Of a stretch of DNA of 64,000 nucleotides, positions 6,680 to 60,274 are shown piece after piece; the first letter of the stretch is position 1, and each line of letters starts with the position of its first letter. The stretch is taken from positions 1,240,001 to 1,304,000 of the forward strand of contig NW_026943819.1 of the NCBI RefSeq assembly GCF_035594765.1. Direction: 5' to 3'. The position numbers were made by a program, and so were the translations under genes. The notes beneath the pieces are model-generated. The model saw nothing but the letters and a program-made list of their open reading frames with translations. It did not search any database and had not been told where the DNA came from. Source of the stretch: Anolis carolinensis. Taxonomy: Eukaryota.

Positions 6680-9039
<2,360 letters not shown>

Positions 9040-9188
9040 AAAGGTGAGCTGTGCCTGGCAATGGACTTCTAGTCTGTTGTGCTTCTAACACATTAACTGT
9101 TCCTTCAGTGATTGCACAGTTCTGATCAGCCCTCTTTGTTTTGCAGGTCCACCAATGGCTTTTTGACTCTTCTGTACATTTACAAAAA

Positions 9189-9194
9189 AATAAA
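9189..9194 (+). terminator. RPS25 polyadenylation signal AATAAA
   Basis: AATAAA about 42 nt into the terminal non-coding exon, followed by GT-rich sequence. Confidence 0.8.
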
Positions 9195-9349
9195 ATAGTT
9201 TCAATTCCTTGACATGCGTGATGATATGAACTTGGGCGGTTGAGTGTTCTCTGCCTGAAATGTGTCTCTTCCCATGATTGGGCTGATGTGTGTTTTTACT
9301 GGTCATGATATTATGTATGGACCAAATCGAAAATACAAGTTGTGACATC

Positions 9350-9687: not shown

Positions 9688-12600
9688 TCACTCTGTTTTC
9701 GGCTTCTTCCTTTTACTTTGGGGTTTGGCTCCTGCTTCAGCTTTGAACTGATGCCTGGGAAAAAACACATAACCAATGACAGCAAGTTACATGGGTCAAC
9801 AAAAGGACCAGCCTTTCATGCAGCAAATGTAATCTTCCTGTTTACTTTCTTAAATATCCATTCCAAGTACAATTAGGATTCCAGACATGGCCACTTACTT
9901 GAGAGGGAGGCAAAAGTTCTTAGCAACTAAAAGGAAACTGGCAAAGGTCTTGGCACAAAAGGCAAACAAGGCCCCAGTTTAGTTTGAAGATGAGATAAAG
10001 GGGATCCTGTGGCGTCTTTTTAAGCTTTTTTTTAAACATTGTTTTGTTGTGGATTGTAAACTACAATTAATTTCCTAAAATACTGCACTATGTTTGTTTC
10101 AATATATATTTGCATACTGAAACAAACTTATAAAGGCAACAGCTATTTTGAAAAGACAGCTACACAATCACTGCCTTTAAATAATTTACCAAACATACAA
10201 TTCGTATTGGTTTAGCTGTCAAAAGTCACAACCCTTTTCTGCCAAAAGCACCATGAACACACTGGGGTATTTGGAGTGTGTTCCTTGCAGGAATCCGACA
10301 TACATAGCATGTGGCATACCTGGACTGCCACCGCCGGCCGTGGTTCCAGACCCGTCCGAAGGAGGGAAGCCAGCCCTCTCCTGTCTCCGAAGTGTGGTCA
10401 AAGTTGGCACCAACGCGATTGGGAGGGAGTTTCTTCAGCTTCTGCTTCTCTTCTTTGAAAGGGAGGAGGAAAAAAGTCTTGCTTAGACACAGAAACACAG
10501 CCTTGGTTTCTAGCACTTGGGCTGGTGCCCCCGGCCAGGAAGATTCGGCTTGCAGGCAGTCTCAATAGTACTCACTTTCCTTGAGAAATTCCTCATAAGA
10601 AGGCCCAATCTGCCCCTGACTTGCCGCCTCCTCCTCGTCCTCCATCATCCAAGGGGGTTTGGCACCTAAAGAGCCAAAGGGCTGATTTAGCACATGTCTT
10701 TGACACAAAAAACAAAGCAAGTGCATTTTTATTGCATTCTCTTCAAGAAGAAGAGAGAAGAAGTGACTACAGGTGCAACGAGGACCACGATCCTTCTCTT
10801 GTCAGTCTGGAGTATTTCCATCTCTGCTATCGCAGGGCCAAAACCATATTCTGCAATGTTTCAGAAGGAGGAAACAAATCTTTACAGACACACCTGTGTG
10901 AATGTTGCCTCCGCTGGCTGCGTCCTGTATTCAAAACAAGTAAAAGCAAAGTTACACAATTGTTTGAGGGGGATTCTATTAAGGGGATTCACGATGGGTT
11001 TCCTTAAGCAGTATTACTAAGGGAAGAGAGTTACGCTTACAGTTTAGCAGGGTATTATTCCCAGCTTTTACGTATCAACCTGGAACTGGGCTATACCGTA
11101 TTTATTGGGGGCCCTTTGCAGGAAAGGTCAGGGTTTTGTGCTCCACTGCCAAAGAAGTATCTCTGTCTCACGAATTAGACACAATTCATGTTTTGGAGGA
11201 TCTAGAGATGAGAAAAGTGGTCTCATTTCTTCCCACCTGGTGGCCAATGAAAGTCAAAGGCTGCCTTGACTCCAGCCAGTCTGGCTCAGGGTCACTCCTG
11301 TGTAGGAAGCCAGGCTGTCCTCCATGATGCACGGTGCTGCTGCTTGGCTGGGGCTGTTCCTGTTCATCCGTGGCAAAGGCAGAGTCACTACAACACAGGA
11401 AAAGGTCTCAGCCTGGGCAGGGAGCATGTGTGTGCATTTGGGAGTACAGTCAGATGCCAGGAGGCGCACGGGGCTCCCATGGTGTTCAGAGGTGAACATC
11501 CCTCAGAAGGTGATGGTCCCAAGCATGCCTTACCTGAGCTTCTTGGTAAAGCCATTGCCTGCAGCAGCTGCTCCATCACAGGACTCCGTCCCTCTCTGTG
11601 GCTGAGTTTGATTCAGGAAAAAAACACTCGTTCCAAGAGACAACAGTAACCATTGTTCTATAGGAGCCCTCGGTGTAGAATCTCTTAATTCCCATCTACA
11701 GGTTATGACAAAGTGAACTCAACCCCCTTGCAATTGAAGGGTCTGGGAATGCAGGCCTTTTGAGCCTCTTTCCACCCCCTTGCCTTTGGGATGCCGAGTT
11801 GGGAACGAAGGCACACCACAACAACCTGGCAGTGTTTCCAAATAGAGGGGAGAAGATTGGATCCAAAACACAGGAATTAAGAGTATTTCAACCCCCACCC
11901 CCCCAGAGGCCATGACAATCATCTTGTTTTGTATGCTGAAACAGGTCAACATGATTATGCCCCTGAATCCAAGATTAGCAAATGCATTAGGCATCTTAGT
12001 GTCTAATGGGCTGGGACGAGGGAGAGTGGGTGGGTGGGTTCCACAGAGGGACCTGCAACCTGAAATGGTGGATACTGCCCACTGGCCGCCTGGGCAGACA
12101 AACCTCTAAGAGGGCCTGCAGCATCTCCTGGCGCCTCTGCTCTGCCTCTCGGATGCGAGCCGCCTCCTGCAACCAGAGCGGGAAGAGAGCAAAGTGAGTC
12201 TCCGGAGAAGAAGAGCAGCAAACAAAGCCTCCCCCAGAGTGCCACCCTCACCTCTTTGATGGCCTCGTCTTCTTTTTCTTCATAAGCGTCCAGCGCTTTG
12301 GTGAGAGACGCTTTGAAGCTGGAAAAGGAGGGAGAGGTCAGCACATCATTTGTTCATTGCCCAAGGCAAGCACCATTCACACTATAGCTTCTGGGACAGG
12401 AGACTGAAAGCGGAGGTCTTTTCAGTTAATGTGCCCTCTACCTTGACTGAAATGGTGACCATTCTCCCCGCTCCAAAAACCAGGGAATAATAATAAAACT
12501 TTATTTATACCCCGCCACCATCTCCCCACAGGGACTCAGGGCGGCTTACATGGGGCAGAGGCCCAAACAACATAAAGACAAAATATAAGCAACGTAATAC

Positions 12601-15600
12601 AAATCACAATATAAAAAAGATAAAACAGTAATACAATATATCAATTAAAACAACAATACAAGGATAAAATATTGCATTTAAAACACATAAATGGTAAGAC
12701 TGTAATAAATACAGGATAGATTATTTAAAACCCTCTGGAGCTGATTAATTAATGACTGTAAGAAGAGGATAAAATTACTAGAATTTAAACCAGTTACATT
12801 CCCTTCCCTGCATCAGGCCCTGAAGTCAACCAGCAGCAGAGAAGGGCCTCAATCCAAGCAGAGCACTTCCTCTGCACCCAGAAGGTGCCAAGACCTAAGC
12901 CATGCGTCCAGGATTAAAATAACCCTCTCCTCAGAAGCAGGAAGGGCTCCTGCCAGGCAGAGAGAGAACAGCAAACACACTGGACCAATAATAATTATTA
13001 TTATTTATTTATACCCCACCACCATCTCCCCAAAGGGACTCGCAGCTCACAGAAGCAGAAGCATATAAACAATGGTCCCCATTCCATATAAATCAGCTTC
13101 TTATGTTCCTGACACTTTATCCTAAATAGCAAGGCCTACAAATCCCGGCAAAGAATGCACTCACAGCTCATATTCTTCAGGGGACACCAGGAATTTTGCC
13201 TTCAGTTTGGGGTCGGCTTTGTTCTCCCACCAGAAGGCAGCGACTCCTCTCTTGTGTTCGGGGCTTGAAAGAGAAGAAAGACAGACCTGCTATGTTGGAA
13301 AGGCACAGGCTTCTAATAATGCTAGTCAGATTGTATTGTACAACTGTGTGACACTTCTCTAAGCGAGAGGAAAACACATATGGAGGCTCCTTAAATTTGG
13401 TGAGCAGAAAGTGATCAAGGCTCAACCAAAATGCACATGCCTGAAGGTGGTTGGCCCCAGAGCAGTTTTCCAGCCCCAGGGACTATTTATTTATTTATTT
13501 ACAGTGTAGTAGAGTCTCGCTTATCCAACGTAAACGGGCCAGCAGAATGTTGGATAAGCAAATATGTTGGATAATAAGGAGAGATTAAGGAAAAGCCTAT
13601 TAAATTAAACATTAAACATTAAATTAGGTTATGGTTTTACAAATTAAGCACCAAAACATCACGCTATACAACAAATTTGACAGAAAAAGTAGTTCAATAC
13701 ACAGTAATGCCATGTAGTAATTACTGTATTTACGAATTTAGCATGAATATCATGCTAAATATCATGATGTATTGAAAACATTGACTACAAAAATGCGTTG
13801 GATAATCCAGAATGTTGGATAAGCGAGTGTTGGATAAGTGAGACTCTACTGTATTTATATTCCGCCCTTCTCACCCCGATGGGGACTCAGGGCGGATCAC
13901 TATGCACATATAAGGCAAACATTCAATGCCATAACACAGAACAGAGACAGAGACAGACGCAGGCACGGGCTGGCCTCAAACTCATGACCTCTTGTTCAGA
14001 GTGATTTGTTGCAGCTGGCTGCTATCCAGCCTGCGCCACAGCCCAACTAAGCACCTCCCGGGAGACGAAATGCAGGAGAGCAGCAGTCTTTGGTTGGGTC
14101 TGCACTGCCACACGATGCCGGTCCCAATCCAGCCCTTTGCTCGCCCTCTGCTGCTCACCTGGCCATATGCTCCAGGAGGCCGCCATGCAGCACCGCCAGG
14201 GACCCGTGGCTCAGGTGCCGCCGCACTTCCTTCCCACAGCAGGCGCACCAGAACTGCCGCTCGTGCTCCGCTGGGTCATAGGGCACCACTTCAGCGCATT
14301 TCAGCATCTTCCGGGCCGCGTCCACCTGGGTGGAGAATCAAAACAGGGCCAGAGATTGGCAGGTTTTTCTAGAGCCAGAGTTCTTTATTCAATCTCCGCT
14401 CCTACTTGTCTCTGTCACTCATGAATTCCTAAACTCCAGGGATGAAAGACAACTGGCCCAATCAACAAGGAAATACGATTTTTAGCAGCACAAACAGCAT
14501 CACAGACCCACTTTTATTTGGGGGGAAAGGGAGAAGTCACACAAAAAGGGTGCTTTCTCCTTTCTCCTGCGTCAGCAGCCTTTTCTCCATAGATAGGGCT
14601 CACCATTGTGTACAATGTGCCTCCACAACTACTTCTGGCTCACAGCAAACCTAAGGTTCTCTCAGCAAACAGGATCTCTTCTGTTTGAAATACCGCATTT
14701 CTTTGATTCCAAGGCACCACTGATCACAAGATATACACGAATCTCGGTGCCACCAAGACAGAACCTTTATTTAGATATATTTTAAAGCATCAGCTTTTAT
14801 AGATGTTTATATTTTGGGAGAAATAATCAAAAAAATACAGTACTGTGGTAGAATTATCTTAAAATGAATTAAGTTCTTTTTATTGTATATTTATTTGTTT
14901 ATTAGCAACATTTATATCCCGCCCTTCTTACCCTGAAGGGGACTCAGGGCGGTTTACAAGTATATATACATACAATATATTATATTATACGACTATATTG
15001 CAATAATATTAGTAATATTGCATGTAATATATACAATTATAATTGTGAATTATAATAATTATTACATTGTATTACATCATGTTATTATTGATATTACATG
15101 TATATACAATATATTATAATATTTTACTGTGTATTTCACATATCTGTTGAATGTAATAAAGGCTTCTGTAAATATTTAGGATGTGTATGTGCTGTGCCTT
15201 ATTTGACAAATGAGGAGTAGTTAACTGTTTTATTACTGATTTGGAAGATACTTGGAAAATATATCTACGGTTTTAAATGTGGTTAATTTTTTTACTGATT
15301 TGTTTGGCATTGAATTAAGCTGCCTTGAGTCCCCTCGGGTGAGAAAGGCGGGGTAAAAATGTTGCAAATAAATAAATAAATGGTTTCTTTAATAGCTTTA
15401 CACAGGTCTTTGGTTAAAGATTGCCCATCCTCATAACAATTGTGTTTCTTGACCATTTTTGCATCAGTCACACTCTCCTGGTTAATTTGATATGAACTCA
15501 GGGCCTCTCCCATCCCAAATTGATCTCTCAGGAAACTGCAGCACTTTATCTGTTATCTGAGTTTACAACTTTTATAACGTGCACTTTACTTAGTATATTA

Positions 15601-15794
15601 TCATAACCTCGCTGTTTTTAATTCCATGTTTTATTAAGTGTGTTTTTATTTCTAGGAGTTAATGTTTAAATTTTATAATTTGTGTATGTTTTTGCTTATT
15701 GATGTATTGTATATTGTTATTGTTTTTATCTGGTATTATCTGTGAGACGCCCCAAGTCACCTTCGGGGGAGATGGAGGCGGGGTATAAATAAAC

Positions 15795-15846
<52 letters not shown>

Positions 15847-17543
15847 GAGAAGGGAGGAGGAGGAGGAATAAGAAGGAAGGATAGAAGGAGACCACAAGAC
15901 GAAGGGGGGGAGGATAAGAAGAAGACCATAAGAAGAGGAGGAGGAATAAGAAAAAGGAAGAATGGAAGGAGACCACAAAAAGATGAAGATGAGGGAGAAG
16001 AAGGAAGAGGAAGAAAGGAGACCATACGAAGATTAGGAGGACGAATAAGAAGGAAGGAAGGAAAAAAGAGGAAGGAGAAGAAGGAAAGAAGGAAGGGGAT
16101 CAAAAGAAGAAGAGGAGGACGAGGAGGAGGAGGAATAAGGAAAGAAGCCAGATAACCTTCCCACCTTCTCCAACTGACTCTTTGGTGCCAGAGCTAAGAG
16201 GGAGTCAAGAAGAGAGTTCCATCTTGTCTCTTTACATCAGCTGGAGGCCTCTCCCTCCAATAACATGCTATGCTACGTAGTTTTATATATATATATATAT
16301 ATATAACTACGTCAGGGGGAAACCATATATATATATATATATATATATATGGTTTTCCCCTGACGTTAAGTCCAGTCGTGAACGACTCTGGGGGTTGGTG
16401 CTCATCTCCATTTCTAAGCTGAAGAGTCAGCGTTGTCCATAGACATCTCCAGGTCATGTGGCCACAGGCATGACTACATGGAGTGCCATTACCTTCCCGC
16501 CGGAGCGGTACCTATTTATCTACTCACATTTGCATGTTTTCGAACTGCAAGGTTGGCAGGAGCTGGGGCTAACTGCAAGAGCTCATTCCGCTCCCGGGAT
16601 TTGAACCTGGGACCTTTCAGTCTGCAAGTTCAGCAGCTCAGCACTTTAACACACTGTGCCACCAGGGGCCCCAATACAATAATATATAATAATAATAATA
16701 ACATATTGTATTGTACATATACTATTCATAATATTATATTGTAATATGATATAATACTAATAATACAATATAATAATAGTACAGTAGAGTCTCACTTATC
16801 CAACACTCGCTTATCCAACATTCTGGATTATCCAATGCATTTTTAGAGTCAATGTTTTCAATATATCGTGATATTTTGGTGCTAAATTCATAAATACAGT
16901 AATTACTACATAGCATTACTACATATAGAACTACCTTTTCTGCCAAATTTGTTGTTTAACATGATGTTTTGGTGCTTCATTTGTAAAATCATAACCTAAT
17001 TTGATGTTTAATAGGCTTTTCCTTAATGCCTCCTTATTATCCAACATATTTGCTTATCCTACATTCTGCCGGCCCGTTTACGTTGGATAAGTGAGACTCT
17101 ACTGTAATACAATATAATAATAGTAATTATATATTCTATTTTATATGTAATATTACTAATAATATTACAATATATTGATATAATACAATATTGTAATTTA
17201 TTGCCTGTATTGTGCTATGCTAATAATATCATACTGTATGTAAATTTAATTTGTAAGCCGCTCTGAGTCCCCTTCGGGGTGAGAAGGGCGGCCTATAAAT
17301 GTAGCAAATAAATAATAATAAATAACGGAGAATACAAGAAAAAGAAGGAAGGACGGAGAGCAGAAGAAGATGAAGAGGAGGAGGGATAAGAAGGAAGGAA
17401 GGAAGGGTCCTTGCTTTGTGGGCGAGGCGGGCCAGTGTCCCCCGGAGGCGGCGCTGGTGCCCGGCGCTGAAGTGGTGCCTCCTGCGGCCCACGAAGGCGC
17501 TGCGCCCGCACAGGCCGCACCGGAAGACCGGCCCCTCCGCCAT
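9688..17543 (-). CDS. CENATAC: Centrosomal AT-AC splicing factor (CCDC84), 11 exons: 17415-17543, 14159-14325, 13165-13263, 12252-12318, 12104-12166, 11534-11601, 11237-11387, 10894-10924, 10576-10665, 10320-10452, 9688-9754
   Basis: Two N-terminal zinc-finger-like motifs (CGLC...HFSAGH; WCACC...[12 protein letters not shown]), [48 protein letters not shown] and [21 protein letters not shown] match CENATAC/CCDC84. Exons sum to 1065 nt (354 aa), in frame. The intron 1 donor appears to be GC. Confidence 0.94.
16311..16670 (-). mobile_element. Sauria SINE in CENATAC intron 1
   Basis: Reverse-complement match to the 7402-7735 copy. Confidence 0.8.
16782..17104. mobile_element. About 323-bp Tc1/mariner-type MITE (TIR CAGTAGAGTCTCACTTATCCAA, TA flanks); representative of about 15 copies
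   Basis: TIRs and TA duplication are visible. Other copies at about 4553-4690, 6848-7078, 13508-13851, 19881-20671 (interrupted), 27539-27730, 28032-28354, 28931-29253, 29994-30316, 36318-36645, 36862-37174, 37357-37679, 42055-42376, 42626-42948, 58277-58548 and 63036-63358. Confidence 0.85.
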
Positions 17544-17779: not shown

Positions 17780-19180
17780 GATTCAGGAAACAGATTCACC
17801 AATAATATATATTCAGGAAAATATTCACCAAGAATATATATTCAGGAAAATATTCAGGAAAATATTCACCAAGAATATATTCAGGAAAATATTCAGGAAA
17901 ATATTCACCAAAAATATATTCAGGAAAATATTCAGAAAAATATTCACCAAGAATATATTAAGGAAAATATTCAGAAAAAATATTCACCAATAATATATAT
18001 TCAGGAAAATATTCAGAAAAATATTCACCAAGAATATATTAAGGAAAATATTTACCAATAATATATATTCAGGAAAATATTCAGAAAAATATTCACCAAT
18101 AATATATATTCAGGAAAATATTCAGAAAAATATTCACCAAAAATATATTCAGGAAAATATTCAAAAAAATATTCACCAAAAATATATTCAGGAAAATATT
18201 CAGAAAAATATTCACCAAGAATATATTCAGGAAAATATTCACCAATAATATATATTCAGGAAAATATTCAGAAAAATATTCACCAAGAATATATTCAGGA
18301 AAATATTAAGAAAAATATTCACCAAGAATATATTCAGGAAAATATTCAGGAAAATATTCACCAAGAATATATTAAGGAAAATATTCAGAAAAATATTCAC
18401 CAATAATATATATTCAGGAAAATATTCAGAAAAATATTCACCAAAAATATATTCAGGAAAATATTCAGAAAAATATTCACCAATAATATATATTCAGGAA
18501 AATATTCAGAAATATATTCACCAAAAATATATTCAGGAAAATATTCAGAAAAATATTCACCAATAATATATATTCAGGAAAATATTCAGAAAAATATTCA
18601 CCAAGAATATATTCAGGAAAATATTCAGAAAAATATTCACCAATAATATATATTCAAGAAAATATTCAGAAAAATATTCACCAAAAATATATTCAGGAAA
18701 ATATTCAGAAAAATATTCACCAATAATATATATTCAAGAAAATATTCAGAAAAATATTCACCAAAAATATATTCAGGAAAATATTCAGAAAAATATTTGC
18801 AAAAATACCTTCAGGAAAATGTTTGCAAATAAATATTCAGAAAAGTATTTGCAGAAATAACTTCAGAAAAATATTAGCAAACAAATATTCAGAAAAATAT
18901 TTGCAGAAATGCCTTCAAAAAAATATTTGCAAATAATATCTTTATAAAAAAAATATTCACAAAAATTTCTTTATTAAAAAAAATCAGAGAAATATTCACA
19001 AAAAATATCTCCAGAAAAATATTGCAAAAATATATTCCAAAAATGTTAACAAAATATTCGCAAAAATATTAAGAAAAATATTTGCAAAAATACCTTCATA
19101 AAAATATTTGCAAAAATATCTTTCAGAAAAGTATTTGCAGAAATATATTCAGAAACATGTATTTGCAGAAATGTTCACAA
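17780..19180. repeat. AT-rich minisatellite of about 12-13-bp subunits (ATATTCAGGAAA/ATATTCACCAA) forming about 38-bp units that degenerate towards the right
   Basis: Direct inspection of tandem periodicity. Confidence 0.9.
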
Positions 19181-58275: not shown

Positions 58276-58962
58276 ATAGAGTCTCACTTATCCAAGCTAA
58301 ATGGGCCGGCAGAAGCTTGGATAAGCGAATATGTTGGATAATAAGGAGGGATTAAGGAAAAGCCTATTAAACATCAAATTAGGTTATGATTTTACAAAGT
58401 AAGCACCAAAACATCATGTTATACAACAAATTTGACAGAAAAAGTAGTTCAATACGCAGTGATGTTATGTTGTAATTACTGTATTTACAAATTTAGCACC
58501 AAAATATCACGATGTATTGAAAATATTGACTACAAAAATGGCTTGGATATTTATTTATTTATTTATTTGCAGTATTTATATTCCGCCCTTCTTTCTCACC
58601 CCGAAGGGGACTCAGGGCGGATCACATTATCTACATACAGGGCAAACATTCAATGCCCATATACACATAGAACCGAGACAGAGGCAGACGCAGAGGCAAT
58701 TTAACCTTCTCCTGTGACGGCACCTCCTCAACACAGTGGACCTGAGGATGTTGGGAATGGTGGGAGTTGAAGTCCAAAACGCGTGGAGGGAGGGCCAAGG
58801 TTTGCCCATGCCTGGGCTAAAGGGGTGCCGGGGACACTCGACCTGACCCGTGTTCTTCTCTTTTTCTTCTTCCTCGCAGGAGCCTTTCCCTCGGAGGGAC
58901 GCTTCCGCCGCAGGGGCCCGGGGTCTCCTCTAGAGTCGCGGCCCGAAGCCCCAGCCAGTCCA

Positions 58963-60274
58963 ATGCACCCCGACAATAAACTGACCAGCCATGGAAAGAC
59001 GACAGGTAACGGCCCGGGCGCCCCCCCCTCCTCCTCGCAGCCCCACCACGTGAGCCACAGCCCCACCTGCAACCTGGGCGCCAAGGGCGGAGGCGGCGGA
59101 GGCGGAGGCAATGGCGGCGTCGGCGGCAAGGTCGGCAACCCCGGCAGACTGAAAAGCGGCCCCGCTGCCTTTGGGGCCGCCAAGGGCAAAGCCAAGCGGG
59201 AGAGGAGTGTCTCGGTGGACTCGGGAGAGCGGCGGGAAGCCGGCCCGGCGGCCACCGCGCTGGACAAGGAGCCGACAGGTGAGGAGGGGGGCCGGCAGGA
59301 CGCGAGCCCCCCGCCCAGGCCCCTCTCCTCCCCTTTTGCCGCGTGGGGGTGGCGGTGGCGTGGCCTTCCCTGCTTTGGCTCCCCGTCCGCCTCGACACTC
59401 CCCTCTCCATCTCCGCAAGTGGGGGTCTCACGGTGGGACTCCCCCCCCCTTCCTCTCAGGAGAAGTGGCCCCTCGGAGCAAGCGGCGCTGCGTCCTGGAG
59501 CGGAAGCAGCCCTACAGCGGGGACGAATGGTGCTCTGGACCGGACAGCGAGGAGGACGAGAAGCCGCTCGGCGGCGGTGGCGGCACCCACAGTGAGTCCC
59601 TTTCCTTTTCTTTTCTGACCAGGCGCTGGCCTTGCAGCTTCGAAGCCTGGCTGCTTCCTCCCTAGCGGAATCCTTTCTTGGGAGGTGTTAGCTGGCCCTG
59701 ATTGTTTCCTGCCTGGCTGCTTCCTCCCTAGGGGAATCCTTTGTTGGGAGGTGTTAACTGTCCCTGATTGTTTCCTTTCTGGATTCCCCCTCTTTTCTGA
59801 GTGTTGCTCAGACCTGGACACAGCATATTATTCATCAACATGGACACAACATATTATTAAATGCTGATCATTAAATGCTAATCAAGCTGGACAGTTGCAA
59901 TGGCAACATTCACACTTGCCCTCAGTTGCAGTGGGTTCCTCTGTCTCCATGGCAGGCAGACTTTCAAAAGTGTTGTTGTTGTTGTTGACTTTCTAAAGAC
60001 ATACAACAACCCAGTGTTGTTGTTGTTTTGTGGGGACTGTTCTGGGGATTTCTCCTTGCGCACTGCCACCTGCTGGATTCCTGAAGGAAGACAAGCTAGG
60101 GCTAAGGAATCCAGTATCCTGTGGAATATTGGGATTTGTCGTTTTTTGGGGGGTGAAAGGGTTGGGTTGAGTCGTAGTCCGATTGTGGATTGCCTTACTA
60201 GGGCTCTCACTGAACTTGACGTCGCAGGACTGGGATCAAAATGGAATATCTTTGCAATGTGGTTCTTGAGCCAC

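Follow-up and report, generated by a model that had tools for sequence, protein, structure and literature searches.

CENATAC intron 5 in Anolis carolinensis is very probably the lizard ortholog of a published autoregulatory splicing switch

Does a minor-spliceosome factor of the lizard Anolis carolinensis carry, within its own gene, a choice between major and minor splicing that could set its level? Loss of CENATAC leads to mosaic variegated aneuploidy, and AT-AC introns need this protein to be spliced, which is why feedback control of this gene matters. The window analyzed here, a 64,000-nucleotide stretch of contig NW_026943819.1 (assembly GCF_035594765.1), contains CENATAC (CCDC84) on its minus strand. 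An earlier sequence-only reading proposed that two donors compete for intron 5 and that use of the minor one leads to a premature stop.

The 11 coding exons join into one open frame of 354 amino acids (Table 1). In an exon-wise family scan, exons 1, 2, 3, 9, and 10 matched Pfam CCDC84 (PF14968) above the curated cutoff and in profile order, and a word search placed exon 10 at 77 to 92% identity to named CENATAC proteins. Together with the exon count, the neighbors are those of a CENATAC ortholog: a forkhead gene upstream and RPS25 and TRAPPC4 downstream. The forkhead-domain exons (PF00250; 21048-22471, minus strand) belong to what is, judged by position, a FOXR1-like gene. The order of CENATAC, RPS25, and TRAPPC4 is the same at bird, crocodile, turtle, and shark loci, with RPS25 and TRAPPC4 labeled by Pfam at loci L002, L006, L007, and L008. 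Read by eye, RPS25 and CENATAC are arranged tail to tail and RPS25 and TRAPPC4 head to head, the latter two occupying ∼6680-9200 (plus strand) and <6480 (minus strand) in the window. At the bonefish locus (L003), a forkhead gene is also found upstream of CENATAC. Elsewhere in the window, an open reading frame at 58783-59595 (plus strand), which we take to resemble an early BCL9L exon, had no Pfam match.

Table 1. Positions in the window of the CENATAC exons and of the elements around intron 5
Feature	Coordinates	Strand	Remarks
CENATAC/CCDC84 coding span	9688-17543	-	11 exons, open frame, 354 aa
Exon 1	17543-17415	-	
Exon 2	14325-14159	-	
Exon 3	13263-13165	-	
Exon 4	12318-12252	-	
Exon 5	12166-12104	-	63 nt; gene model and RNA-type contigs
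Exon 6	11601-11534	-	68 nt; gene model and RNA-type contigs
Exon 7	11387-11237	-	
Exon 8	10924-10894	-	
Exon 9	10665-10576	-	
Exon 10	10452-10320	-	
Exon 11	9754-9688	-	
Weak U2-type donor GAG/GTTTGT, productive; intron from 12103	12098-12106	-	Junction 11601^12104 in run X4
Spacer between donors, 28 nt, joins exon 5 in the U12 form	12076-12103	-	Conserved (26-28 nt)
U12-type donor GTATCCAC, +7 A not T	12068-12075	-	Invariant GTATCCA in 9/9 species
U run and U12-type branch box TTCCTGAAT	11611-11625	-	14 invariant columns, 10/10 species
Shared 3' splice site CAG	11602-11604	-	Used by the U2 junction in X4; invariant
TGA, premature stop of the U12 form	11576-11578	-	
Block of introns 5 to 8	10666-12103	-	Each intron contig-spanned in 4/4 runs

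Two donor sequences stand at the start of intron 5. The sequence-only reading had correctly located a weak in-frame donor on the minus strand (GAG/GTTTGT, with the slash at the exon border), and the second donor that it reported, GTATCCAC, does begin 28 nt downstream, at 12075, agreeing with RTATCCTT from +1 to +6 and differing at +7 and +8. A rice intron with a GTATCCA donor has been classed as U12 type (PMC7367187). The dinucleotide preceding the lizard donor is CA; an AG at -2/-1 would be incompatible with a real U12 donor (PMC10853781).

The acceptor likewise bears out what had been proposed, a U12-like branch box with no pyrimidine tract after it. The box, TTCCTGAAT at 11619-11611, has one mismatch to the TCCTTRAY-type consensus (G for T), and its two candidate branch adenosines, 11613 and 11612, lie at -12 and -11 from the acceptor, inside the 11- to 13-nt optimum for U12 introns (PMC3584512). 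The U run sits upstream of the box, the AG is at 11603-11602, and the stretch from -14 to -4 is 45% pyrimidine, the lowest value among the ten CENATAC introns. The parts of the vertebrate intron 5 switch are thus all present: an in-frame U2 donor, a U12-type donor a short distance downstream, and a common acceptor with a branch box.

Among the ten CENATAC introns, either U12 motif occurs only in intron 5, and GTATCC has 8 copies in the window (both strands, 128 kb) and 1 in the gene body. Under a first-order Markov model fitted to the ends of the CENATAC introns, both motifs would arise jointly by chance in ∼1e-4 of introns, an optimistic estimate given that the motifs were picked after being seen; conservation is the stronger test. 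An AT-rich tandem repeat at ∼17800-18500 and beyond, just upstream of the CENATAC promoter, contains TTCCTGAAT in its unit, so window-wide counts of the branch-box motif are inflated; we take the occurrence of these letters in the repeat as coincidence. Further GT dinucleotides at 12082 (+21) and 12052 (+51) on the minus strand would leave the frame intact (361 and 371 amino acids), and junctions from neither were seen in four RNA-type runs.

We compared loci retrieved from named non-human CENATAC proteins of a tinamou, a brush-turkey, a bonefish, Phrynosoma, two turtles, a crocodile, a shark, and a caecilian. No mammal is among them, and the squamates are the window and Phrynosoma only (rat P0038 and Rhineura P0156 came without a gene record). 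A Peromyscus locus holding exons 9 to 11 only was left out. Counts over 9 species refer to the window plus the eight orthologs with exon 5, and counts over 10 add the shark acceptor. The shark contributes its acceptor only: its N-gapped locus yielded no exon 5, and a GTATCC at L008:4940, considered as its U12 donor, was therefore dropped. The closest of these loci to the window is that of Phrynosoma, an iguanian lizard.

Both donors, the branch box, and the acceptor are kept in all eight orthologs with exon 5, from bonefish to birds, in keeping with the expectation that GTATCC and the branch box would be conserved in amniotes. The U2 donor is invariant as GAG/GTT.GT in 9/9 species, as is the U12-type donor, and the spacer between them is so strongly conserved that all 28 nt are identical in bonefish and Chelonia. 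The 14 invariant acceptor columns are consecutive and cover the branch-box region. From -23 to -3, identity to the window is 76 to 100% for the intron 5 acceptor in the eight orthologs and 5 to 57% for the other CENATAC acceptors outside lizards. Birds have a shrunken intron 5, 119 nt long in the tinamou (L001:5402-5520) and 183 nt in the brush-turkey (L002:6067-6249), with all switch elements intact.

The predicted consequence of the U12-type donor also stood up. It adds 28 nt, shifts the frame, and reaches a TGA in exon 6 of 11, giving models of 192 versus 354 amino acids. This stop precedes the exon 6/7 junction by only 42 nt but the four later junctions by 193 to 447 nt, the last of them by 447 nt; the vertebrate switch calls for a premature stop >50 to 55 nt ahead of a later junction. 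The U12 form runs into a premature stop in 9/9 species at three different spacings. With 28 nt, the shifted frame ends in exon 6; in the crocodile and brush-turkey, the 27-nt spacing is in frame, yet the spacer itself has an in-frame TGA; and in the tinamou, with 26 nt, the stop falls in exon 7 (the start of which is inferred).

Taken together, intron 5 is very probably the lizard ortholog of the published CENATAC intron 5 autoregulatory switch. The analysis directly supports the presence and conservation of the elements, the premature stop, and use of the U2 donor. In the proposed mechanism, U1 at the weak donor (12103) would compete with U11/U12 at the downstream donor (12075) for one acceptor. 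Major splicing would yield full-length CENATAC; minor splicing would add the spacer and shift the frame into the exon 6 stop, with nonsense-mediated decay (NMD) expected. The U run and branch box may also give the major pathway a pyrimidine tract, as suggested in PMC8329584. CENATAC is a minor-spliceosome component, as had been stated, and more precisely belongs to the U4atac/U6atac snRNP (de Wolf 2021, PMC8280824), which would close a negative loop whereby CENATAC falls when minor splicing is strong and rises when it is weak. For this lizard, we infer use of the U12-type donor, NMD, and feedback on the protein level.

The switch is already known: it, its interpretation as feedback, and its conservation as far as lizards have been in print since 2019 to 2021. 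The sequence-only reading suspected a prior report of a U12/U2 switch in human CCDC84, and there is one: human cells produce both forms, and the U12/U2 ratio moves from ∼65/35 in controls to ∼15/85 in TALS (RNU4ATAC) cells (Cologne 2019, PMC6800510). De Wolf 2021 named the autoregulatory circuit, and Appendix Fig. S9A there depicts intron 5 with its shared acceptor and the exon 6 stop, with an alignment of 43 vertebrates (PMC8280824); one lizard is already included, so the surmise of conservation to squamates was right. Later work repeated and extended the human switch (Akinyi and Frilander 2021, PMC8329584; PMC10853781), and the competing donors and feedback logic proposed for the lizard match all four of these accounts. 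Direct minigene proof of the CENATAC circuit was not found in the literature searched. The locus makes modest additions: an independent conservation check, imperfect motif letters that are invariant, an in-frame stop through which the 27-nt archosaur spacing stays unproductive, and a hint that the retention of introns 5 to 8 is coupled.

Set beside published descriptions of human CENATAC, the lizard agrees in gene, intron number, productive U2 donor, unproductive U12 donor, common acceptor, and exon 6 stop, and differs in that the U12 junction, abundant in human cells, is absent from the contigs of four lizard runs. A parallel circuit has been described in plants (de Wolf 2021, Fig. S9B), with support for it from an Arabidopsis preprint (bioRxiv 10.1101/2025.02.25.639993). 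In plant CENATAC/TITAN LIKE, minor splicing of the gene's own pre-mRNA likewise breaks the frame and gives negative feedback, but the AT-AC intron is embedded in exon 3, its retention is productive, and there is no rival U2 donor. The parallel drawn earlier with SNRNP48 and RNPC3 holds in part. There too, U11/U12 acts through U12 motifs on the pre-mRNA of a minor-spliceosome protein and produces an unproductive isoform, but the motifs do not serve as donors: as PMC8329584 relates Verbeeren 2010, the USSE consists of tandem U12 5' motifs that go unused as donors and switch on a U2 acceptor upstream of them. CENATAC has a single such motif, which serves as a donor in human, plus a branch box and shared acceptor; a single RTATCC, rather than a tandem repeat, was found across its ten introns. 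The dual-type 3' splice sites of DRAM2, PFDN5, and KANSL2 also serve one acceptor from a U2 or a U12 donor, but PMC10853781 does not describe these genes as targets of minor-spliceosome feedback.

Four RNA-type runs from four studies bear on this lizard's transcripts. They are not labeled as RNA, but they carry spliced junctions and so are RNA; all consist of assembled contigs, which drop rare forms. Junctions 4/5, 6/7, 7/8, 8/9, 9/10, and 10/11 of the gene model were confirmed in 4/4 runs. The two donors predict two junctions for intron 5, of which the productive one, 11601^12104, appeared in one run of four (X4) and the U12 one, 11601^12076, in none. This absence says little, given that contigs drop rare forms and that three of the runs do not show the productive junction either; the most it suggests is that the U12 form does not dominate in X4 at steady state, which would fit with NMD. 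At 12064, position +12 of the U12-type donor and outside the conserved motif, run X14 carries another base, probably a polymorphism.

In every one of the four runs, contigs also cross each of introns 5, 6, 7, and 8. None spans intron 4 or 9, and the lack of coverage of intron 9 and of the sampled end of intron 3 makes DNA contamination unlikely. This gives a hint of a block of coupled retained introns that begins at the switch intron, and retaining any one of the four leads to a premature stop. A variant of the competing-donor switch builds on this block and could coexist with it: U11/U12 would bind the imperfect sites, block U1, and splice slowly, so that the main unproductive RNA would be a nuclear transcript retaining introns 5 to 8. 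We regard this as unlikely. The idea that minor splicing is slow and traps transcripts in the nucleus is established, RNPC3 feedback operates through nuclear retention, and neither the +7 A of the donor nor the G of the branch box varies across bony vertebrates. Contig depth, however, gives no ranking of isoforms, NMD would keep the U12-spliced form out of sight at steady state, the U12 junction is plentiful in human cells, and short neighboring introns are often spliced out late for other reasons.

That both U12 motifs carry a mismatch to consensus, as had been noted from the start, we count against the preferred reading of a competing-donor switch. The two letters are shared by every species compared (the +7 A in 9), which marks them as a conserved state and not as decay, and they are probably visible in the published logo too. 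A speculative and unlikely reading is that both mismatches and the conserved spacer are kept by selection for binding with slow splicing and that in reptile tissue the switch mostly detains the transcript with introns 5 to 8 unspliced; if true, the published NMD model would gain a retention arm.

The choice might instead be set not by snRNP competition but by a conserved RNA hairpin lying between the donors. It would account for the conserved spacer, and in both birds position +4 of the U2 donor and -1 of the U12 donor covary (U-A to G-C). This double change, however, is one event in GC-rich birds and is attained by 22/500 shuffles, no species folds better than shuffles (z, -1.5 to +0.1), the registers vary between species, and the consensus energy is only -1.0 kcal/mol. 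Unsupported on these counts, a hairpin is a very improbable explanation. Slightly less credible still is that the U12 motifs are decaying relics in this lizard and intron 5 an ordinary weak U2 intron: although it would fit the mismatches and the U2 junction as the only one seen, lizard-specific decay is rejected by the ancestral state of the mismatched letters across species and by 25 acceptor nucleotides identical in the window, Phrynosoma, and Emydura despite intron 5 lengths of 502 nt in the window and 1,250 nt in Phrynosoma.

Two observations lie away from intron 5. At the intron 1 donor (17414, minus strand), the frame needs a GC donor, AAA/GCAAGG, where Phrynosoma, the two turtles, and the caecilian have AAG/GT; lying outside read coverage, it may reflect a weak GC-AG intron, a sequence variant, or an error in the assembly. 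The Peromyscus locus (L009:7983-9009) is a partial CENATAC copy adjoining an apparently intronless RPS25.
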